Part shown: one piece after another, positions 2,214 through 63,925 of the stretch
Numbering within the stretch: the first letter of the stretch is position 1
Layout of the letters: each line of letters opens with the position of its first letter
Source of the DNA: Anthoceros angustus
Taxonomy: Eukaryota > Plantae > Anthocerotophyta
Assembly (NCBI GenBank): GCA_010909165.1
Contig: MU008177.1
Coordinates: forward strand, 124,001-188,000
Direction of reading: 5' to 3'
Length of the DNA stretch: 64,000 nt
Made by a program: the position numbers and the translations under genes
The notes under the pieces: model-generated
The model's database searches: none
What the model was told of the DNA's origin: nothing
What the model saw: the letters and a program-made list of their open reading frames with translations, nothing else

Positions 2214-3214
2214 CCATTTGCCACTGCCGCTGGGTAGAATTTTCTGCACCCGGTACCGGCCTTAATTACTATTTTTTTGTATATTCCGCGTCAGTAAAGT
2301 TGTTCTCCCTCGTCCCAGTCCACTTGAAACATAAGTGCGTCCCAAGCGCCTGCTGCCCCACATGTTCCACGGGCGGCGTCCAGGCCATGTGCTTCGTGAG
2401 AAAGCGTGAGAGCGAGCTTCCTCGGAAGCATCCCCCGGCCCCACCCTGGCGACAACCGGATTCCCGTGCCTCGCCACCTCACGCGCGTTTCCGGCTGTTT
2501 CGTCTTGTCATTGCATTTTTTAAGTAAAACCTCCCAGAAATTCACACCAGTTGTTTCTCGTACATACATACCTCCCACATGATAGTTCAACAGCGGTCCA
2601 TCTAATAAGCCTCCATGACATGCAAGAGAACTTCATTCCGCCCCTACTGCTCTCTTTTCTGCTTTCTCTACTATTATTGGATGGAAAGATGTATCACCCA
2701 GAGTATTATTAATAAATATATTCTTCAGAAAATATTTGAAATAAATTAATATTTTAATGATTAGCATGGGTCATCTCTTTGCTAGGAAGAGATGAGTCAT
2801 CTCTTCTTAGAAGCCTCCAAGTAGCACATATGTAGTAAGATACTTCTTAAAATTAATTTTTTTATTAAATATTTCTTATATAAATTATCAAAATATAAAT
2901 TATATAAAATTTAAAATTAATGTAAAAGAATTTGGTAAGAAACGTGGGAAAAGGTGGCACAAAACACCGGAGGAAACTGGGGCTATCAACTCACCTACGT
3001 ACAAGTAGCTTGATACGTGAATTATATGTAGTCAAAGAGGTAGTCGTGGGTGTGAATGGGTCGTATTTACCGTGTAAGATATGTATGTATTGATCTAACG
3101 TCGGGTCCCTCAGGGGCGAGTGAGTGCGAGAATCGGGCTCAAGTAGGTGAAAGACGGGGTGTGGTGCTCATAGCGGTACATTGTGGCGACGTCCACCTCA
3201 CCGGAAGCAGCGAG

Positions 3215-3256: not shown

Positions 3257-3677
3257 AGCGTCGGGGCCAGGATCAGGGTTGGAGCCGGGTCGTGAGCAGG
3301 TGCGAAATGTCGAGGGTTGGCAGCGGCGTCCCTGCTCCGCTCCTGCTCCTGCTCCTGCGTCTTGTGTGTCTTGCCATGCCGTGCTGCCATGGCTGCTGCG
3401 TGTTGAGTGAGCAGCACAACATGGAGCATTGCACCCGATCCTGCCTGCACGCCGCGGATGGTGACGAGCAGGGCTTCGGCTGAACCCTGAACGAGCAAGC
3501 CGAGCTCCGCCATTCTCAGGTATGCTTTCACGGCCAAGAAGGGCCTGCCGTGGCTCGTGAGCTCGGTTGTGGTGTTGGCTGTGTTGCAGCTGGCTGACGG
3601 TGTTGTTGTGTGGACTGGGGGCTGCAGGGAGGTGATCCGAGGGTAGGGCGGGGGCCGAGGAAGGGAGGCAGGGCACG

Positions 3678-5675
3678 ATGGATGCGGCGAGGATAGGGAG
3701 CTGGGACGACATGATCCAAGAAAGCTTCTGGGCCGGCTCGGTGGACACGGGCGGGGATCCGGGGCCGGACGAGGCCAGGGAATCGCCGGTGCAGCTCAAG
3801 CTGCGGGCGCTGATGGAGAATGTGTGCGACGCGCGCTGGACCTATTCCATCTTCTGGCAGCTGACGGGGGCAGGCACGGCGCCCGGCCAGCGGACGCTGG
3901 GGTGGGGAGACGGGGAATTGCGGCGGAAGGAGTCGGACATGCAGACGGAGCGGACGGTGGACAGCGAGCAGCAGGCGGCCAGAGTCCGGGTTCTGCAGGA
4001 GCTGGAGCTGATTGTGAACCGCGGGGTGCGGGATACCAGCCAGGACCTGTCGCAGGATTTTGTGTCGGATACGGAGTGGTTCTTCCTGTACAGCATGTTG
4101 CAGACCATTGCGGAGGGGAGCTGCGTGCCCGGGAGGGCTTTGATGAAGGCCAGCTATGAGTGGCTCAACGAGCCGGCCAACCCGGAGCTGTGTGACCGGG
4201 CAAGGTTTGCGGAGATGGCGGGCTTGCAGACTATTGTGGCTTTGCCGGTGTCGCATGGGGTTGTGGAGCTTGGTTCTACCGAGCGCATCTTGCCGGATGC
4301 GGGGTTTATCGATAGGGTGGAGCAGCTGTTTGAGAGAGGGGATGCCCGCGCGGCCTGGCAGGTCGGGGACTACCACATGCCGCCTGCGAATGAGGAGGTG
4401 GAGACGCTGTCGTACCTCAACTCGGACTTCTTTGGGAATGGAAACGGGGTGCCTCAGGCCATGTGCCACCCTAAGGAGCACGACTACAACCAGCAGCAGC
4501 AGGTCAGGCAGTTTCCGGCCCAGCAACAGGTGATGACGGCTTCTGCTGCTGACGACTTTTTTGGGGAGTATTTTCCCTTTCTGAATTCCATGGGCATGGA
4601 CATCCCCACCTTCCACCAGAACCCCTTTGCCATGCCTGAACAGAAGGGATACGGTGTGCCGCAGCCCAGGATACATGTCGAGATACAGGCTCACACTCAG
4701 TGTCCGCTGGGGGCCGGTGAGATTCTGAACCCGACGGCGGCTGTGGTTGCCCGCGCACAGCCGCTGTCGCTCAAGCCTGAGGTGGCTCCTGCCCAGAATG
4801 GGCTGCACATGTTGCAGGACAAGCCTCAGCATGTGAAGCAGCAGTACTCCGAGGGTTTGGGGCTCCCCTCTGCCACCAACATGGGCTCCAGCATTGAACC
4901 GGATCAAGAAATCGACTCTGAGGCTGAGGTTTCCTTCAAGGAATCTGTGGAGAGCAGTCTCATCAACGGTCAGAAGCCTCCGCGCAAGCGAGGTCGAAAA
5001 CCGGCTAACAACAGGGAGGAGCCTTTGAACCATGTGCAAGCTGAGAGGCAGCGTCGTGAGAAGCTGAATCAGCGCTTCTATGCTCTCAGGTCTGTGGTGC
5101 CCAATGTTTCCAAGATGGACAAAGCGTCCTTGTTAGGTGATGCCATTGCGTACATCAAGGACTTGCAAGCCAAGTTGCAAGATTCGGAGGTCAAGATCAA
5201 GACTTTGCAGACGCAAGCGCCGCCGCAGATGGACAAGGCAGCCATGGATGCGGCCTCCAAGGGTGATCAGGAGGCTGGGAACACTGGAGCAGTACCCGGT
5301 GGAAGGTTGATGTCAGTGAGCAATCGGGTTCCACCAGATCAGAAACCGTCCATTCAGGTTGACATCTGTGGTATGGAGGTGTTCATCAGAGTTCGGTATC
5401 AGAGGGAAGCGTATCCTATCACACACCTGCTGTCAAGCTTGCAAGACTTGCAGTTGGACGTCAGAGATGCAAATATTTCTACTGTGGACGGCTCCACCGT
5501 CCATCATGTTGTGTCAGCCAAGTTGAAAAAGGAGCATGAAGAAATTAAGAAAGAACTGTTTGTGGAGGCTCTGGACAGAGCATTTCAGTTTACTCCCTTG
5601 CCTACCAAGCCAGACAATGGGAGCATTGGCAACAGCAAGCAACCTAGTACAAGATTTGCAGAACCTCAGAGGTAG
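3678..5675 (+). CDS. MYC2: MYC2-like bHLH transcription factor (subgroup IIId/e), intronless, 665 aa
   Basis: bHLH-MYC_N motifs ([46 protein letters not shown]) plus [54 protein letters not shown] bHLH and an ACT-like C-terminus. Confidence 0.95.
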
Positions 5676-16991: not shown

Positions 16992-17478
16992 ATAATATGG
17001 AGCTAAGGCAACACACATATAACACTAAATGAACTCTTGATAACTAAGATCCAAGGGGCTATGGGCTATGGGTCAAGCAATATTGAGGCTATAAGATATG
17101 GGTTAAGCAGGGATGATGAGGCCTCAAAATGAGAGAGCATTAAGAGAGAGGCTTCGTAGCGAGTTGCGTGCTGAACCTTGGGCAACATGGGCTAATTCTC
17201 CACACAAACAAGCATCGCATGATTTCCAGAGCATGTGGCACCCACCACCTATCCATCCTACATGCCTGCTTCTCCCATGCCCTAGTGAGATCGGTCCATT
17301 GTACCATCCGATTCCACCCTTACAAGTGTCGTGTGTCCAGGTCGGAGTGCAACCAAAAGTGTAATCGGAGGATGGTTACCGGTTGAATATTAATGAACAA
17401 GTTGGAGAGTGTACAACTCGACTTACATGCTCCACTGCTTGGCAAGGCCCAGATGGATAGTACACCATAAGGCACTCA

Positions 17479-17652
17479 ATTGATGGTCTAGGTTTTTAGT
17501 GTGTTGGAAAGGCATTTTCTTTTCTTTTCAGAAAAAATAAAAAATAAAAATATAATAGATAAAGTATTTTATTTTATTTTTATTCCGAAAACAATAGTAT
17601 ACACAATCCAAGAAAAGACCTTGCCGATGCACCAAAAATCTAGACCATCCAA
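17479..17652. mobile_element. Small foldback/MITE-like element
   Basis: ~33-bp imperfect inverted repeats (TTGATGGTCTAGGTTTTTAGTG... / ...CACCAAAAATCTAGACCATCCAA) around an AT-rich core; no TSD resolved. Confidence 0.45.
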
Positions 17653-17693
17653 TCAGCATGCAAGTAGTAATTAATATGGCATTCGTTTCTTAA

Positions 17694-17859
17694 GGTTGAA
17701 GGGTTTCTACAAGATTCTTTCATGTTTCGACCAAGATATAATGTTCAAATTTTCACCTGTTTTTCTAATGTGGAGGGGTTGAAGGATTTCTACAAGATTC
17801 TTTCACGTTTCGACCAAGATATAATGGTTCAAATTTTTACCTGTTTTCCTAATGTAGAG
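17694..17859. repeat. Two ~83-bp direct repeats
   Basis: GGTTGAAGG.TTTCTACAAGATTCTTTC..GTTTCGACCAAGATATAATG... repeated at 17694 and 17777. Confidence 0.85.
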
Positions 17860-17956
17860 CGCAGAATTCTCCACAATATGCAACCTTAACATGATTTTAT
17901 ATCATTCATTTTTTGTCCGGGAAGAAACAAAAAGGAGGGGCAAAGTTCTAGGGTTA

Positions 17957-18540
17957 AGATGGGAACGAGGATAAGAACAACCAATTAAGCTTTTCAAAGC
18001 CCCTTCATCGTTTCAATTGAAATGTGATGGCCAAGGTGTGGAGAACATAAATAAAACAAGATAGGAACGAGGATACGACCAAGCACTTAATCTTTTCGAA
18101 GGCCCTTCATCATTTCAACCTGATGGCCGAAGTGTGGATAAGGGCTGGTAGTTTTACATTTCACCGCTTCTTTCAGAGGGAATATTGTCATGGAATTGGA
18201 TCTGTGAACACATCAAGGTAAGGAGATTAATCTTATATCTTACATCCGTATATTTTACAGTCCCCAATTGTAGCACGCTCCTTTAATCTCTTCTCATTCT
18301 TCACATCTAACGAAGAAACATCTGACTCCTCTGCACTTGCGAATCACCTCGGGCTGCCAAAACCTCAAACATGGGTTGGAAACAAGGATGCTAAGGTGGT
18401 AACGAAATTACTCTTATACTTACATTATATTATACAGTCCGCAATTGTGGCAAATTCCTGAACCTAACTCCTATGGGCTTGCGAGTCACCTCGGGCAGCC
18501 GAACCCCCGAATATGAGTTGCGAACAAGGATGCAAAGGGT
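17957..18540. repeat. Diverged local duplications downstream of CYCLOPS
   Basis: GGAACGAGGATA...CCCTTCATC.TTTCAA occurs twice (~17960, ~18063); TACAGTCC.CAATTGT...TCACCTCGGGC...AACAAGGATGC occurs twice (~18250-18390, ~18430-18535). Confidence 0.6.
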
Positions 18541-55247: not shown

Positions 55248-56359
55248 GCATTCCTGGAAGCTGTCTCAGAGAAACAAGCCAAACTTGGAGCCTCGGAATT
55301 TGTTGAGACACCGGGAGACTGAACAAGAACCTTTTGACAGTTATGTATCATCAAGAGAAATTACTCTCAAACGAATACCGAACAAGAAACGTGTTTTAAC
55401 AAATAGGGCTCAAGCATTTGAGTCACCAAAAAGCAGGCCTCAAAGCCATCGGAGCCTGGAGGCATCAAATTGCAAGCCTAAAAACTTTCTAATTCCTGAC
55501 GGATGTAATGAGGCATCAAGAGCCATTACTCTCTAACTAATCTCGGCTCCAAAGAAAGTCTCCAAGAGCAAGATTTCTAGGAGGAGAGATTTATCGCCAT
55601 CTCTGTAATGATCTAGCCTAGTAATTTTGATTCGGAAGCAGCTTTGAAACCAGCCAACTCTGTAAAGGTCTAGCCTAGAAATATTTGATTTGGAAGCTCC
55701 TTTCTGGTTACAGCTTCCGATTTGGAAGCAGCAGCTTCCGACATGGAAGCAGCGGGTGCGCATAGCTTGTCTGGGCAGAAAACCTTGGGAAGAAAGTGAG
55801 AATCATTCGGTCTGCTCCAGTAGCGTTTATTTAGGGTTTGGCTGCTTTGGTCAGGACTGTCATCAGAGAATCGCTGCTTTGGGCCGGGTGTTCAAACGTT
55901 TAGGGTCAGGAAGTGTCTTAATTTGGTGGTCCGGCAAGAGCGGATACCGGATACAGGTTGGTTTAAATGCTTTGGTTGGCGGTGTTGTGTCAAGCATGCA
56001 CTCAACTCAACAAGGCTGTGTACCTAGGGAGGAGGTAGTGTGCGGTCCCGTGGTAATGACAGCCACTTTGCGCTTGCGCGAGCGTAATTGTGGCTCAGCT
56101 GGTGGTGCTCGGTCCGCTTTGAGGGTTTGTAATCAGCTCCTTTTGAACGTGGGCTGAATTGGTGCTGGCAGGTGCGGGCACAGCTGCGGGAGCACGGGAA
56201 GGGGATGGTAGGACCGGCGCAGGGCTGGCTGTGGTGAGGCGAGGCGAGGCGAGGCGAGGCGAGGGGAATTGAGCGCTCGCGGGGCCGCGCGGGCGAGCCA
56301 GGGCAGTCACTGCCTGCAAGATTAGATTGTGGTGCAGGGCTCGGGGCCGGGAAGCAAGC

Positions 56360-57880
56360 ATGGCGGATCACGAAGCAGACGCCGACACCAAGCTGGCGCA
56401 CTTCCAGGATGTCACGGGCGTGGACGACATTGCTCTCTCGCTGCATATTCTGGAGGCGCATAACTGGGACCTGCATGCGGCTGTGTCCACCATGATGATC
56501 GACAACGTTCCCAGCGAGGTCAACCAGCGGGTGGCCTCGCCGGGGCCTGCCCTGGCCGGGGACATGGACTGGGATCACAACAATTGGCCTTCCGTGGGGG
56601 ATATGGAGAGTGACGCCGGGTTTGCGCCCTCGAATGGCAGCGATGATGTGGATGCTGTTGCGCTGGCGGCCCAGCCGCTGCAGAGAGTGCACTCCGGGTC
56701 TCTGCCGTTTGCTGCGGGGTTGGGGCATTCGAGACTCAGCTCCGCGCACTATGAGGGACTGGTGCCTGGTGAATTGGTAAGGGTTGGCCCCCGGGGAGTG
56801 GTGTGAGGTCTGGCAAGTTTTTGTTCGCTGGTGGGAGGTGTTGTTGTGCATGCTGGGTGGCCGTGGAGTTTTGTGTGTGTTGTGCTGCTTTTTGGTGAAG
56901 CTTTTGCATGGCGGAGTGGTGGTTTGTGGTTTTGATGTGGATCTACGGGTTTGGCTCATGGTGGCAGATTGAGGGACCAGGGACACCTGACGAGCTGGCT
57001 GGGGTACTGCGGGGATTCGTAGATGATCAAAGTGCTCTTCTCGCAGCAAGAGTAGAGGAGGAGGAAAGGCGGGTTAATAGACGCTTGAGGGAGAAGCAAG
57101 ATGCTGCTTTCCAGGCTGCTCTGCAAGAAGACCAGGTAGGTTATACCCAATTTCGATGCTTTATTGTTGGTTTATACAGGAGACAAAGGGGGTCACTCGT
57201 TGTGATCAATGAGTATTTTTGCTATTTTCTGTGGAGCAATTTTTTCTGTTGCTGATGAGCCGTGCTGTTGGGGGCACAGGAGAGGGAGCGAAGATTGCAG
57301 GAGGGAGTACACCTTGCTGCCAAAGCAGCAGCCGAGCAGGAAAGGAAGCGGAAGGAGGAAGAGGAAGCTGCAGCTCAGGCAGCAGCAGAAGCAGCTGAGA
57401 GAGAAGCCGCTCTGGAGAGGCGCAGGAAGGAAAAGGCTGCAGCTTTAGGTGCCGAGCCAGAGAAAGGCCCAGAGGTTACGCAGGTACTCAAACAACTTCA
57501 GTTCAGATGTGTAGGATGTGATGACGACTTCCCAGATGCCATGCCAGCCGTCCTGTCAGCTTGGGTTTACATTTGTGACCTCTCTGTGGGCTCTCAGCTT
57601 GGGTCTACATTTGTGACTTACTCTCTGTGGGATCTCTTGTTTGCAGGTTGTTGTCCGTCTGCCTAATGGTGAGAGAAAGGAAAGAAGATTCCATAACTCC
57701 ACTACAGTGCGCTCGCTGTATGATTTTGTGGACTCTGTAGGAAGCTTTCACGCCTCTAAGTACAGCTTGATCACAAACTTCCCCAGAAAAGTGTACGGCC
57801 CGGATATGTTGCAGGTGTCTTTGAAGGATGCTGCTCTCCACCCGCATGCAAATCTGTTCGTGCTGGTGGAAGAGAGCTAG
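56360..57880 (+). CDS. Plant UBX-domain protein, PUX10/FAF2-like but lacking the central region
   Basis: UBA-like N-terminus (KLAHFQDVTG...ILEAHNWDLHAAV), coiled coil (EEEERRVNRRLREKQDAAFQAALQEDQ), UBX (VVVRLPNGERKERRF...LYDFVDS...LITNFPRKVY...LHPHANLFV). Confidence 0.88.
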
Positions 57881-58509
57881 GGTTTTTGGCCATGGGTATT
57901 AGTTTGTGATATATAAGCAATTGAAAGGAAAGTTTCTCAGTTTCCATCACCTGAGAACGAGGCTTGTCGAAATGAAGGGGTCCGCGGCCCTGGGAGCGTC
58001 CAGAAAATCGAGTTGGGGTGGAATTGCTCTTTAGGTTAGACCGAAGTTAGACGAGTACCTACCTAGTTTCAGGGTCAAATTTTGTAGCATCGAACTATTG
58101 GCATTAAGCTGTTGGATCTTGTGGACAGTAGGGCATGGCACCTTCACATATCATACACGGCTTTCGGAAGTCACTTGATTATTCTGCTGGGTCATGGCTG
58201 CAAAGTATAAACTTATTGCAGTCGCTTCACGCCCAGCTGTCTCAGGTTGAAGTTTTTCTGTAGTCACGGTAGGGAATCTCAGGTTTAAGCTTTGGAGTAT
58301 TCTCACAATTAAACCGCTTCCGAGGTTGTCCACCACAGAGCTAAACACCTCCGTGTTAAGCCGCTTCGCAAATGCAGCACGAGGACAATCAGGACATGAC
58401 AGTATCACTGGATTAGCGCGCGATGCTGAGTGAAATGGATCTTCTAGGCAGGCACATGCACTCACACATTGTTAGGAGAGGACTGGTGAACAACACACGA
58501 GCGAGCAGG

Positions 58510-58569
58510 CACATAACACATAACTGGTAAGAGGACACATGACACATAACTGGTAAGAGGACACATAAC
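58510..58569. repeat. 26-bp tandem duplication
   Basis: ACACATAACTGGTAAGAGGACACAT repeated at 58516 and 58542. Confidence 0.8.
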
Positions 58570-59319
58570 ACAATGCTACTTAACACACTGGTTGGCCCAC
58601 TGGTGGACAATGCATGTTTACAAAATGTGGTGAATTGGAAGGGGCATGCCGGGATTTTGACAGCTTGGCCATAACAAAATGTGGAAGCTGGAACTGTCGC
58701 TGCAGTGAAGGAACAGCTGCTGAATAGTCCCAAGCAGGAGCCGCCGGCACTTTCTTGCAGTGTCCGCAACGCTGGGGACCGCAATCTTTGCCTGGCTCCT
58801 ACAAGAACGTACTTGGAAGACTCTTCTTAGCTTTCAAGTACCTTTCCTCGTGTTATGCACAGGGATTGTTGAATCACTGGCCTTCACTAAACTTGCACAC
58901 ACACGTCTGCAGGACACCGCTGCGGCTACTATGACCCAACATGTGGCGATGTATTTTGGTCCCGGTGACACAGGACCGCTCTCCTTCTGTGGACGAGTAT
59001 GTGGACAAGCACTAGTGCCTTTGAGTTAGGCAGGCAGCTTCACTCACAAATTGACAAAGGACTAATACATGGCATTCTAAGTAGCCACCTGCCTGGTGAA
59101 CATGTATGCAAACTGTATTGAACTGAAAGCTGCCTGGACGCCAGAGCCAGCATCTGTCCAAACTGTGCCCTCAGCATAATCCGCAAACACCACTGATCCA
59201 CTTGTGAGCGTGCTGCTACTTAATTGGGCTCCCTGGCACTGGAGACGGGGGAAGCAGCTTCCTGTTCAGGACATCTAGCTGAGGTGAGTCCACAAGGCCC
59301 GTCCTAGCCTGCTAGCCTG

Positions 59320-59510
59320 TTCTAGCACACAATGCTTCTGCATGGCCTCTTCTAGTAAACAATGCTGAGCAAAGTATGGCCTGCGTGGTCTGTTCCAGCA
59401 TAAAACGCTGAGCAAAGTCTGCCCTGCACGGTCTATAATTCCAGCATTGTCATTGCCTGTTCCAGCACACCATGCTGAGCAAATTCTGCCCTGCATGACC
59501 TGTTCAACAC
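59320..59510. repeat. Imperfect ~40-bp tandem repeats
   Basis: Recurring ATGCTGAGCAAA.T.TG.CCTGC...TGTTCCAGCA units (about 4-5 copies). Confidence 0.6.
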
Positions 59511-59939
59511 TGTGGTACCATTAAATGCTATGCAAACCCCTGGCATGCGCTTGAACAACATTGCACTTCGGAAACTACATACATTTGCATGCCCGGCTCC
59601 GACTCTCGGATTTTTTTGTCAGATCAGCGGTACATTACAAAATGTCTATTTTGCGTTTTCTTATATGTTTGTTTATGTAATCAAATTATCAAAGCGTGAA
59701 TGGACAATGTGAAACCCAATGAGCATGATTATGGTATGACTACTTTTCTAGTACAAGGTTTGAGTTACGCACTAAAATTGAAATTATTATTTTTTAAAGA
59801 AAAAACTTATTATCTATAATATAACTTCTCATTCACATATGTTTTATTGTGCATATTAGATCGTATGATGATAAACAGATCATTGAATTTGTTATTTTCT
59901 CCCAATACATCGTTTATTACAGTGATCTCGAGTTCAAAT

Positions 59940-60160
59940 AACATTTATTAGCAGAGTTCATTATGATGATGTCAAGTTCAAATGACATTATTAGCAGAGT
60001 TTATGAGGGTGATGTCAAGTTCAAATGATATTTATTAAAAGCTGTACAGGGTTCTAAATAATTTCCACTAAGAGAATCTCTTGCTGCATTAATGACATTT
60101 ATTAAAAGCTGTAGAGGGTTCTAAATAATTTCCACTAAGAAAATCTCTAGCTGCATTACG
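59940..60160. repeat. Local duplications at the GDSL 3' end
   Basis: ATTAGCAGAGTT...TGATGTCAAGTTCAAATGA occurs twice; TTTATTAAAAGCTGTA.AGGGTTCTAAATAATTTCCACTAAGA occurs twice, the second copy being the gene's coding end. Confidence 0.75.
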
Positions 60161-61920
60161 AAACATAGTCGTTGACGTTATCTGCACCGTTGTCTGCGAG
60201 TTTATATAACATCCCGCTAAATTGTATAAGCAAGTATCTTCCTCTTCTGATAATGTAAAATACATAAATTAATAATCTATTTTGAAATTCCAAAGCGAAT
60301 ACAATCAAATGAATGTGTTTCTACTAGTTCTTAATGACACAAATAATATTTTTTCATGGAATATGAAAGCAAAACAAATTTATCAAAAAAATGTACGTAC
60401 CATAATTCTGAATTGTAGACGTTGATGACATGGCTGTTCTTACAAAACTATAGTAATCTGCATGTATAAAATTGACGTTTGGATTTAGAGATTGCATAAT
60501 GCTAATCATTTGCATCAATTGTTGATTATGAGCTTCCACTGCAGTATTTAGTGCTTGCACACACCCATCTTGATCAAGCGGAGTGTAAGGATGTCTACTT
60601 CTTGCTGCTCGTCGTTTTACCAACTCAGAACATCCAATTGGAGGAATATTAATAAACATAAAGTTTGTACTAGTAACATTTCTAATAATATCCTCTACAT
60701 TAAGTTGAATCTCTTGGATGACATAAGGCACAACCAATGTTGTGAGGTTGTACGTAGACGTGTTGAGAAGTGTATATGATGCAAGATAATCGTTACCTCC
60801 AATTTCAAATATATATAGTCCTTCTTTCAAATCTTGCTCTTTTGGCAAGGGTTGGTTGTTCACTACATCTGCATATAAAATTTAAAAAGTAATAAATAAA
60901 ATTTCATTAAATATATTTGTAAAAAATCTAAAAAAATGAATTAATTCTCATGAAATATAAGATATATTAATACATTACCTTTAGCATCAAGTAGATTAAA
61001 CCTAAATTGATGGAACCAATATATTTCCATACCAAGATTATAAACCGGATTAATATTAGTGGCTGTAGCTCCAAAATATGCAAAACTTACACCACTCTTA
61101 GAATTCGGCCGGATCGTCTCCATATATGGAGCAGGATACGATAGACCCAGACCTAGTGCAAGAAAGTCACTCATACGATATTGATACTCATTAGGTTCCA
61201 CATTCACCATGTATGCTTCGATACTTTGATTATAAGAATAAGCATCTAAAGCTAACAAATTTCCATTATCCATTAATGAATCTCCGAACAGGAATATTGC
61301 TGGATAACATTTGCTTGCTTGCGAATTTAAACTTTCATGGAAGCCAGAACACAAATCTCCGTTGGCAAGTATCCATATAAATATATAAACAGGTAGCATA
61401 ATCTTGGATATTCGAAAAAGGTGCAAATGCTGCTTCATTGGGTCCAGAATCTTGGAAACCGGGATGGTAAGTAGGCCAGTTACTGTGCCATGGTGAAAAT
61501 TTCGGACGCTCCGCCTCGCCACAAACACGACGCTCAATGGTAGGATAAACGCGAAAATCTGCACGGGCGTGATCAGCAAACATCACAGATTAACCCTGAC
61601 AGACATAGCTCGGCCACAGAAACACTGACCAGCCCAAAACTCCTGGTGCAATGCACATGGCCATGACCAACATCCCTGGTAGCAGATAGAACGCTTACCA
61701 ACACGGTCCAGAATGCCACGGTGCTCGTCTGCAGTGGAAAGGAAACATCGTAGGTCATAAGCGTGTTGATATATCGATGACAAGGCTCGATAAAATACGG
61801 CATGATGCCGAGGAGTGTGAGCACCAAGAAGATGATCCCGGCAAGCAAGTGAAGCCCGGGCACATAATGAGACGAGTCTTTCCGCAGGCCTCCGGGCGCA
61901 TTATCCTTGAAAGTGTACAT
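60089..61920 (-). CDS. Chimeric gene: lipid phosphate phosphatase (PAP2/LPP) N-terminal TM segment fused in frame to a GDSL/SGNH lipase-like domain (475 aa predicted)
   Basis: Exons 61920-61699, 61558-60979, 60868-60401 and 60246-60089, all GT-AG, total 1428 nt in one frame. LPP-like IEPCHRYINTLMTYDVSFPLQTSTVAFWTVL|IFAFILP...RRSVRNFHH; GDSL blocks FLFGDSLMDNGN, FAYFGATA, EIGGNDY, NIPPIGC, ADYYS. Confidence 0.78.
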
Positions 61921-62612
61921 GGTTACTGCCTTATATCAATCAGCTGCAGCGACAGGCAAAAATACAAAGCCAAGCAATGACGATTCAAACTCCGAGTCCT
62001 CGCAGCAGACCTTCCTTCATGCACAATCGGAGCCGGCCAGTACCTGGTTCGACGGCCTTGAGTAATTGCTTCAGCTCAGCACGCGCAACTGGTGTTAACA
62101 ACCTTCGCCAACGGCAGGAGCCTGCGAATCCAGCTGCCAAAGTCCCGAGGAAAGAGATGGAGAATAGCGCATTCCGGAACCGAGGGAGCGGTGGAGTATT
62201 GTTGGAACCGCGTCATCACCCGGGATGGATGTGGGGGTCCTGGAATGAACAAACCCGCGTCCGAACATTCTAGAAACCCTGCTGCTGGGGAACATGCTCC
62301 TCCACGTTCCGCTGCAGAACGTCGATCGTGGTTCTGCGAGCGTGAGGAGAAGAGGCGTATCCTTTGTACCAGGCCCTCATTTGGGAGGGCTGGCTGGTGT
62401 GACTTTTTTAGGGCTTGGAAAAGTAGGGGGCAATCCAGTCTTATCCGAACTCTAATCGAGCCTAATCGTTAGATTCTCCTGGGTTGCAGGCAAAACATAG
62501 GCGCCATAGCCAGTTCGTATTTCTGCTCACGCTCGCCAGCCACCGGAGCAAACACTCCCGAGGCCTGTGCCATTGTCGGGGATTCGGGAGGAAGGAATTA
62601 AATGGAAATACA

Positions 62613-62783
62613 TTTCACAGCAGCAAACGAAACGCCGAGCGTCCCTGGAGAACGTCCAGAGGACCCAGCTTGGATGGACGCATCATTCAGCACATTCATC
62701 ACAGCAGCAAACGAAACGCTGAGCGGTCCCTGGGGAACGCTACGAGGTCCCAGCTTGGATGGATGCATCATCCAGCACATTCG
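62613..62783. repeat. Two ~85-bp direct repeats
   Basis: TCACAGCAGCAAACGAAACGC.GAGC...CCCAGCTTGGATGGA.GCATCAT.CAGCACATTC occurs twice. Confidence 0.85.
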
Positions 62784-63086
62784 AATTCATACATGCAATA
62801 ATATTGCGTAGCCTTGACGTACGTAGACTGGTAGAGGCAGTCGTTGCGAGGGGCTGGTGAAGCTGAGTTGGTAGCAGCGACGATAGGGACTCTTGTCCCG
62901 TTTGAGTTTGAATTCCGACCCTCCAGATCTCTGTATGTGCAAGGAAGGTGGAACTCCGATCGTCGGCTATAGTATCTTCCAGCCAAACGGTCAGAGGGTG
63001 AGGAATGTATCTGAATTCGAAGTTGACAAGAGAATTGCAAACCTTCAGCGGCTTCGAGTTCCCGCCGTTTCCAAAGTTCCAAGCTC

Positions 63087-63500
63087 TTGGCCATGGAGGA
63101 GCGCGATGCTGGTGCTGGTGCTGGGGGTGGTGCTGGTGCGGGTGCTGGTATTGGTACTGGTGTTGGAGCTGGTGCCACTGCTGGTGCTGGTGCTGGTGCC
63201 AGTGCTGGTTCTACCACCACCTTCGACGATCTTTGTGATGACGTCCTGGAAATCATTCTGGAGCAGCTTTCTGCGGCACAGCTTCGGCGAGCTCGGACCG
63301 TAAGCAGGAGGTTCGATCGAGTAGTGTCTATCGTGAGGCGACGTGTGGTGGCACCGCTGCCAGCGCCGGGCCAGCTCTCCCAACTCGACCACTTTGATGA
63401 CAACGTCCTGAGAAACATTCTGGAGCGAGCGCTGCCTTCCCCGGCAGAGCGTGCGCGAGCTCGGACCGTGTCCGAAAGGTGGAACCGACTACTGTCCTGA
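63087..63500 (+). CDS. Small protein (137 aa): Gly/Ala-rich stretch + two F-box-like motifs
   Basis: TFDDLCDDVLEIILEQLSAAQLRRARTVSRRFDRVV and HFDDNVLRNILERALPSPAERARARTVSERWNRLL fit the F-box consensus (LPxEILxxILxxL...LxxxxxVSKxW); N-terminus encoded by (GGTGCT)n. Confidence 0.65.
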   Translation: MAMEERDAGAGAGGGAGAGAGIGTGVGAGATAGAGAGASAGSTTTFDDLCDDVLEIILEQLSAAQLRRARTVSRRFDRVVSIVRRRVVAPLPAPGQLSQLDHFDDNVLRNILERALPSPAERARARTVSERWNRLLS

Positions 63501-63597
63501 CGTACAGGCTCCTACAGAATTGTCCCGGGGATCCAACCCGATGGCGAGGTGTTGACAAGACGGTGCCTAGCCAATGCTCGTGAGGCTGTAGATGCAT

Positions 63598-63925
63598 CCC
63601 GTCGGATCTAGATCTGTAGTCCTACACATTGTTAGGGCATATTATGGCTTCGTCGTGCTCGGCAGGGCACGAAGTCCCATGACCATGCGACTCCATCATC
63701 TTCAAGCTTCTGGATCACATTCACGTCCAAGACAACATCGGACAGGCAAATCTATTCTACTCCCGTCGGATCTAGATCTGTAGTCCTACACATTGTTAGG
63801 GCATATTATGGCTTCGTCGTGCTTGGCAGGGCACGAAGTCCCATGACTATGCGACTCCATCATCTTCAAGCTTATGGATCACATTCACGTCCCAAGACAA
63901 CATTGGACAGGCAAATCTATTCTAC
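63598..63925. repeat. 164-bp tandem duplication (2 copies, near-identical)
   Basis: CCCGTCGGATCTAGATCTGTAGTCC...GGCAAATCTATTCTAC at 63598 and 63762. Confidence 0.93.

Follow-up and report, generated by a model that had tools for sequence, protein, structure and literature searches.

A probably accidental in-frame chimera of a truncated lipid phosphate phosphatase gene and an AT-rich GDSL esterase/lipase fragment in Anthoceros angustus

Does a reading frame that runs unbroken from the start of a lipid phosphate phosphatase (LPP) into a GDSL-type esterase/lipase represent a new lipid enzyme? The question is raised by a locus on the minus strand of a 64,000-nt stretch of Anthoceros angustus contig MU008177.1 (assembly GCA_010909165.1, positions 124,001-188,000), which we refer to as the window and whose own numbering is used throughout. 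A first-pass annotation, made from the letters of the window alone, described a four-exon, 476-codon spliceable frame at this locus and proposed that it encodes a new membrane-tethered GDSL-like protein. The frame itself checks out: the four exons (222, 580, 468 and 158 nt) add up to 1428 nt, or 476 codons with the TAA at 60091-60089 counted; all three introns begin with GT and end with AG, in phases 0, 1 and 1, with an Asp and a Glu codon being split; and no exon contains a stop when translated singly. Thus, at the level of DNA the chimera is real and its exons can be joined in silico, but the catalytic motifs are gone and we found no support for the function proposed for it. We consider it probable that chance brought the two gene fragments together in the genome, and that the locus, rather than being an evolved fusion enzyme, is a chimera with the character of a pseudogene or, at best, a young orphan gene without catalytic activity.

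We begin with the LPP half. Exon 1 (61699-61920, 74 codons, 51% GC, with a GC content at third codon positions (GC3) of 0.68) corresponds to the N-terminus of LPP/PAP2 proteins and, as judged by HMMER, tblastn, hydropathy and composition, encodes the first transmembrane helix (TM1) and the first lumenal loop. When exon 1 was compared by HMMER with 1.84 billion representative proteins, four matches were obtained. Three of them align to the N-terminal part of LPPs, with a plant tandem LPP in first place (E-value 6.5e-8, 32% identity). Another match, the open reading frame (ORF) P0003, is 47% identical to exon 1 and sits on a contig of ~50% GC (Logan contig SRR33208241, hereafter L001), on which an intact LPP gene with five or more exons lies at 3412-5000 and includes all three catalytic motifs, C1, C2 and C3. 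The IEP.HRYIN loop of this LPP is the closest match to exon 1, and no synteny was found between L001 and the window. The first exon of the L001 gene ends at the same FW.VP position as exon 1 and is followed by GT, so that the site of intron 1 in the window (61559-61698, 140 nt, GT..AG, 52% GC and thus host-like) is the conserved LPP intron site, as had been claimed.

The similarity continues into exon 2, the LPP-like start of which (61433-61558, 50% GC, GC3 0.59) completes TM2 and adds the cytosolic HH loop and a weak remnant of TM3 and the C1 lysine. Local alignment to exon 2 of the L001 gene extends the LPP match over the first 26 residues, through the HH motif, with a score of 39 against 19 ± 4 for shuffled sequences (1 of 1000 shuffles reached 39). 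The stretch after GLL, with the ILDPMK motif that had been read as TM3 and the C1 lysine, matches L001 only marginally (p ~0.05) and is too weakly hydrophobic to score as a membrane helix. The proposed homology to TM1-TM3 thus stands for exon 1 and the start of exon 2 but is marginal for TM3 and C1. Searches with P0001 and the L001 gene (tblastn and tblastx) detected no C1-C3 exon anywhere in the 64-kb window and, in particular, did not find the rest of an LPP at 54-64 kb, and Pfam PAP2 has no match at the locus. The first-pass annotation had noticed that C2 and C3 are absent; we find that C1 is likewise missing as a motif, of which only the first lysine may remain. Because the match is confined to the N-terminus, and C1-C3 and the PAP2 domain are absent, we conclude that what is present of the LPP is ~113 codons from the 5' end of a diverged gene.

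The GDSL half starts within exon 2 (60979-61399, GC3 0.26) with an internal ATG at 61399 and the hydrophobic, signal-peptide-like stretch that the first-pass annotation had seen the frame run into, followed by blocks I and II of the GDSL family; exon 3 (60401-60868, GC3 0.27) contains block III and the PIGC, GC..LN and ADYY motifs. The Pfam Lipase_GDSL model matches exon 3 with an E-value of 1.3e-11 (45.5 bits, cut-off 23.6) and exon 2 weakly. For a more sensitive comparison, a profile hidden Markov model (HMM) was built from 92 full-length angiosperm At1g28570-like GDSL proteins, gathered by protein search with two-row alignment; this clade HMM matches exon 2 over its positions 25-132 (1.2e-11) and exon 3 over positions 179-298 (6e-21). 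Block I (FGDSL, with the nucleophile Ser) aligns to block I of the HMM, and the oxyanion-hole blocks II (G.SFA..GATA) and III (GGNDY, with its Asn) are present and align to both the reference proteins and the HMM. Identity to the angiosperm references is 32-37%, and the alignment shows that the conserved GR.S.GR segment that should follow block I is missing from exon 2. Other searches returned little: a word-index protein search with exon 3, whose length limits left out most full-length GDSL proteins, gave one cotton fragment only, the single match in the PDB sequence search had an E-value of 0.82, and scans of metagenome and viral contigs with exon 3, of limited reach, found no relatives.

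The end of the GDSL domain is a different matter. The last quarter of the clade HMM (positions 300-390) has no match in any frame of the window or of the AT-rich island in which the GDSL half lies (59610-61420; see below), and the D..H motif of block V, which supplies the catalytic Asp and His, is absent from every minus-strand frame of 59620-60420. Exon 4 (60089-60246, 52 codons and the TAA) is an open frame that matches neither Pfam nor the clade HMM in any frame, and by blastp coordinates it is ~35 residues short of a GDSL C-terminus. In a second frame of exon 4, we noted by eye a ..DYVS just ahead of ..NAARD.., as though ~8 codons with W-D-G-.-H had dropped out between them; blastp and the HMM give nothing here, and the resemblance is a lead only. 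Because block V is absent, the Ser-Asp-His triad lacks both its Asp and its His, and the full GDSL/SGNH fold attributed to this half does not hold. A fusion protein, if made, would be catalytically dead on both sides.

The introns of the GDSL half nonetheless point to where it came from. The introns between exons 2 and 3 (60869-60978, 110 nt, 12.7% GC) and between exons 3 and 4 (60247-60400, 154 nt, 22.7% GC) both have GT..AG ends and are both in phase 1. In the one reference gene used for the comparison, P0123, which is of the Arabidopsis lineage and lies on L002, introns 2 and 4 are 1-3 residues away from these sites. The intron between exons 2 and 3 splits an Asp codon (G/AT) in the window gene, as intron 2 does in P0123, and the one between exons 3 and 4 is at most 3 residues from intron 4. 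The shared positions and phases indicate that the GDSL gene is of plant descent.

The two halves also differ in composition. Change-point analysis delimits an AT-rich island of 1.8 kb and 32% GC with sharp edges at 59610 and 61420, set in a window with a mean GC content of 50.6%. The contrast extends to codons and introns: GC3 is 0.26-0.28 in the GDSL exons versus 0.59-0.68 in the LPP exon parts, and the GDSL introns have 12.7% and 22.7% GC versus 52% for intron 1 in the LPP part. Further, the dinucleotide TA has an observed/expected ratio of 0.88 in the island versus 0.62-0.66 in the host sequence. The two halves have different compositional histories, and the sharp edges together with the distinct dinucleotide signature indicate that the island DNA evolved in another compositional setting. 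The break lies inside exon 2, just past the end of the LPP similarity, and the AT-rich DNA begins ~20-35 nt ahead of the internal ATG (61399). Since the AT-rich sequence sets in just before this ATG and its signal-peptide-like stretch, the AT-rich linker of 11 codons between the two halves (61400-61432, with the change-point at ~61420) is most likely the original 5' leader of the GDSL gene, which happens to be in frame. Such a leader would be in phase and free of stops with a chance of ~0.11 (1/3 x 0.32, roughly 1 in 9).

An abrupt change of composition at both edges is also what would result from a mis-join, or from contaminant sequence built into the contig, and the first-pass annotation had named a mis-join near 61440 as a possibility. 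We therefore turned to read-derived contigs from the same organism (run X1), possibly from the sample behind the window assembly. These contigs cover 58000-59912 and 60613-61570, cross both edges of the island by 130-300 nt and do so at a depth of 13-14, equal to that of the flanks. The junctions are thus present in independently built contigs, which argues against an assembler mis-join, and at 61440 the contigs run straight through. There is no X1 contig over 59913-60612, which might be taken to favour an artefact; this gap coincides with tandem repeats and the most AT-rich stretch. The differences between the X1 contigs and the window, which are confined to small indels, were also counted in favour of an artefact, an explanation that we nevertheless regard as very improbable. 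These differences are found in twelve places over 59247-62233, nearly all of them letters missing from X1, and the flanks are free of substitutions; eight fall in homopolymers of 5-7, and the other four, in CG or CAG/CTG contexts, fall inside the GDSL exons (61219 and 60627, 1 nt each; 61107 and 61062, 3 nt each). They look technical and are possibly related to methylation-dependent base calling in one of the data sets. At 61219, the length in the window agrees with that of an inverted copy of exon 2 (see below) and with the open homologous frame, and we therefore trust the window there.

Where, then, might the island have come from? Three observations would suit a foreign source, such as horizontal gain from a far more AT-rich plant or the cargo of a virus or mobile element: the sharp edges and distinct dinucleotide signature; a higher AT content of exons and introns than in an Arabidopsis-lineage GDSL gene; and the failure of in-place decay as an explanation. 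Decay in place by cytosine deamination, of the kind seen in repeat-induced point mutation, was considered and rejected, since CpG observed/expected is 0.77 in the island and not below that of the flanks, transitions and transversions between the two copies of exon 2 number 16:13, and the neutral flanks, LPP intron 1 included, stay at ~50% GC. A foreign source nevertheless seems unlikely to us. The best relatives are angiosperm GDSLs at ~33-37% identity, with the metagenome and viral scans blank, and neither terminal repeats nor a target-site duplication was seen at the edges. In addition, an X1 contig has a loose end at 60628, the 20 letters of which are, by eye, ~75% identical to the sequence just before 60628; the sample may thus contain, at another place, a diverged GDSL paralogue. 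We lean toward the alternative, namely that the island is possibly a native copy from an AT-rich compartment, in preference to a one-off horizontal transfer. Two smaller AT-rich patches of 33-35% GC occur elsewhere in the window, at 2549-3094 and 17368-18018; neither has a convincing coding ORF, and they are probably intergenic or promoter DNA.

The 3' side of the locus bears the marks of rearrangement. A tandem duplication (60024-60157, two units of 67 nt, 94% identity) covers the last 22 codons and the stop of the frame, and a second tandem repeat (59923-60037, 2.6 units of 43-44 nt) lies directly 3' of the gene. Beyond these, on the plus strand at 59661-59765, is an inverted and truncated copy of a piece of exon 2 (61249-61145), which contains an in-frame TGA and is cut at the left edge of the island; it is 73% identical to its counterpart (blastn E-value 1.5e-14), with differences spread evenly over the codon positions (9/11/8). 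The presence of this inverted copy beside the gene suggests that the island was torn from a locus with two or more GDSL copies. Neither terminal inverted or direct repeats nor a target-site duplication was seen at 59610 or 61420. The edges show no hallmark of capture by a transposon, and the sole long inverted repeat is internal, being formed by the piece of exon 2 and its inverted fragment.

Taken together, these observations are best accommodated by the following scenario. The 5' end of an LPP gene (exon 1, intron 1 and ~40 codons more) breaks off at the first lysine of C1 and abuts the island, which would derive from a GDSL esterase/lipase locus of plant type and retains a leader remnant, the gene's own ATG and signal peptide, blocks I-III and two introns. 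The two would have been brought together by a rearrangement, i.e. an insertion or illegitimate joining, in which the remainder of the LPP was lost, and the frame would be continuous by luck, the GDSL leader of ~11 codons happening to be in phase and stop-free.

Several findings weigh against this reading. First, the GDSL exons are stop-free over 140 and 155 AT-rich codons, for which the chances are 1e-5 and 4e-6, the LPP part is stop-free over 113 codons (chance ~0.01), and the splice sites of the chimera are intact. That both stretches are still open implies either that decay is recent or that the frame is still selected, with some constraint left. Second, hydropathy permits a topology in which TM1 and TM2 are joined by a third helix, the former signal peptide, and the GDSL part comes to lie in the lumen. 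Third, the evidence that the locus is silent is weak: it consists of a single contig-level run of one sample (X2), which we take to be RNA by guess, in which no contig lies on 59288-63500, whereas a neighbouring gene is covered at a depth of 179. In Anthoceros agrestis, some genes with heterochromatin marks, a GDSL lipase among them, are reported to be switched off in the gametophyte and switched on in the sporophyte (PMC10952607). Finally, X1 differs from the window by small indels inside the exons, so that X1 does not confirm the exact frame.

Two other explanations were considered. The first is that the fusion is functional, with an LPP-derived two-helix anchor that tethers or delivers the GDSL-like domain to the lumenal or apoplastic side. 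The unbroken frame of 476 codons, the canonical splice sites and an LPP part that is strongly diverged yet open would be expected of such a protein, as would a feasible topology. On this last point, the membrane tethering put forward in the first-pass annotation proved feasible by hydropathy, with the GDSL part lumenal, although the TM3 remnant does not score as a helix; an argument of our own that the topology conflicts with a fusion was dropped, because the remnant is not hydrophobic and the signal peptide could take the place of the third helix. Against a working fusion are the loss of catalytic motifs from both halves, a linker that looks like a read-through leader, the rearranged 3' end, the lack of an X2 contig at the locus, and the exon 1 search, in which neither a protein containing exon 1 nor a homologous fusion was found among the 1.84 billion representatives. 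On balance, we judge a functional fusion to be quite improbable.

The second explanation, somewhat less improbable in our view though still unlikely, is that a GDSL-like gene is expressed alone from the ATG at 61399, giving a secreted and probably non-catalytic protein, with the LPP fragment as an upstream relic or as part of a long 5' leader. This would fit the gene's own ATG and signal-peptide-like stretch, the AT-rich leader that begins ~20-35 nt upstream, the open exons 2 and 3, the conserved blocks I-III and the intact splice sites. It sits poorly with the island holding scarcely any native upstream DNA, such that a promoter would fall within the LPP fragment, and also with the missing block V and the lack of an X2 contig here. 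Nor did the word-index protein search contain a stand-alone GDSL model of the locus among its candidates of 117-371 aa, limits outside which a fused model of 475 aa would fall. The same search gave no match (E<=0.01) to the junction-spanning ORF of 212 aa, a blank to which the length limits leave little weight.

We return to the accidental juxtaposition of two fragments as the preferred reading. The claim of a new lipid-enzyme architecture fails, and the locus is in our view another gene-fragment chimera, a known kind. Its value lies in being a clean, datable example of a chance in-frame chimera between a truncated host gene and a compositionally alien fragment. Since neither catalytic centre is present and nothing points to expression, annotators should avoid names such as 'bifunctional' or 'membrane-tethered lipase' for it. 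A bolder possibility, which we hold to be a long shot, is that the chimera is a young gene expressed, for example, in the sporophyte or in reproductive tissue, in which the LPP anchor drives a dead GDSL-like domain into the secretory pathway, and that the island belongs to a genome-wide AT-rich class by which diverged genes of plant type reach new contexts in this hornwort, with a foreign, viral or unusual genomic compartment as its source. If this were true, the locus would be a visible case of gene birth by fragment fusion. In any event, the origin of an AT-rich, gene-bearing island is of more interest than a single chimera.

The surroundings of the locus include other genes and repeats. On one side is a multi-exon gene on the plus strand (56327-58191), the ORF translations of which, by eye, resemble UBA at the start and UBX at the end. 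A 3.5-kb X2 contig covers the 3' end of this gene at the depth of 179 mentioned above, which indicates that X2 contains transcripts from this neighbourhood. Between this gene and the island, the sequence at 58552-59500 contains PPR-like ORF fragments and is accompanied by an array of 43-67-nt repeats (59315-59505). Many X1 and X2 contigs match here, at an identity no higher than 90-95% and with joints as well as loose ends, suggesting that the stretch is part of a multi-copy, transcribed family. On the other side, an ORF on the plus strand (63087-63500) has two F-box-like motifs and, ahead of them, a microsatellite of 12-nt units coding for Gly and Ala (63095-63224), and X1 contigs are apparently cut at 63098-63213. 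A tandem duplication of ~164 nt with 97-98% identity follows at 63597-63925.

How does the locus compare with known systems? With plant LPPs (the Arabidopsis LPP1-4 type, P0001 and the L001 gene), it has in common TM1, the IEP.HR lumenal loop, TM2, the cytosolic HH loop and the position of the first intron; unlike them, it consists of only ~113 codons, at 32-47% identity, and lacks C1 (K......RP), C2 (PSGH) and C3 (SR.....H...D). With the clade of GDSL proteins that resemble At1g28570, At1g28580 and At2g27360, which includes proteins named sinapine esterase and guard-cell-enriched GDSL lipase, it shares the signal peptide, blocks I-III and the PIGC, GC..LN and ADYY motifs. Compared with an Arabidopsis-type GDSL gene, the window gene is without introns 1 and 3, the GR.S.GR segment and the C-terminal quarter, and whereas the introns of the Arabidopsis-lineage gene P0123 have 29-37% GC, those of the window gene have 13-23%, with a GC3 of 0.27. 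Chimeric gene-fragment loci and pseudogenes arise in plants by illegitimate joining or by element-mediated capture. The present locus differs from those formed by element-mediated capture in that the island edges are without terminal inverted repeats or a target-site duplication. It resembles plant gene-fragment chimeras in its joined truncated pieces of unrelated genes, its local duplications, its inverted fragment and its fortuitous open frame.

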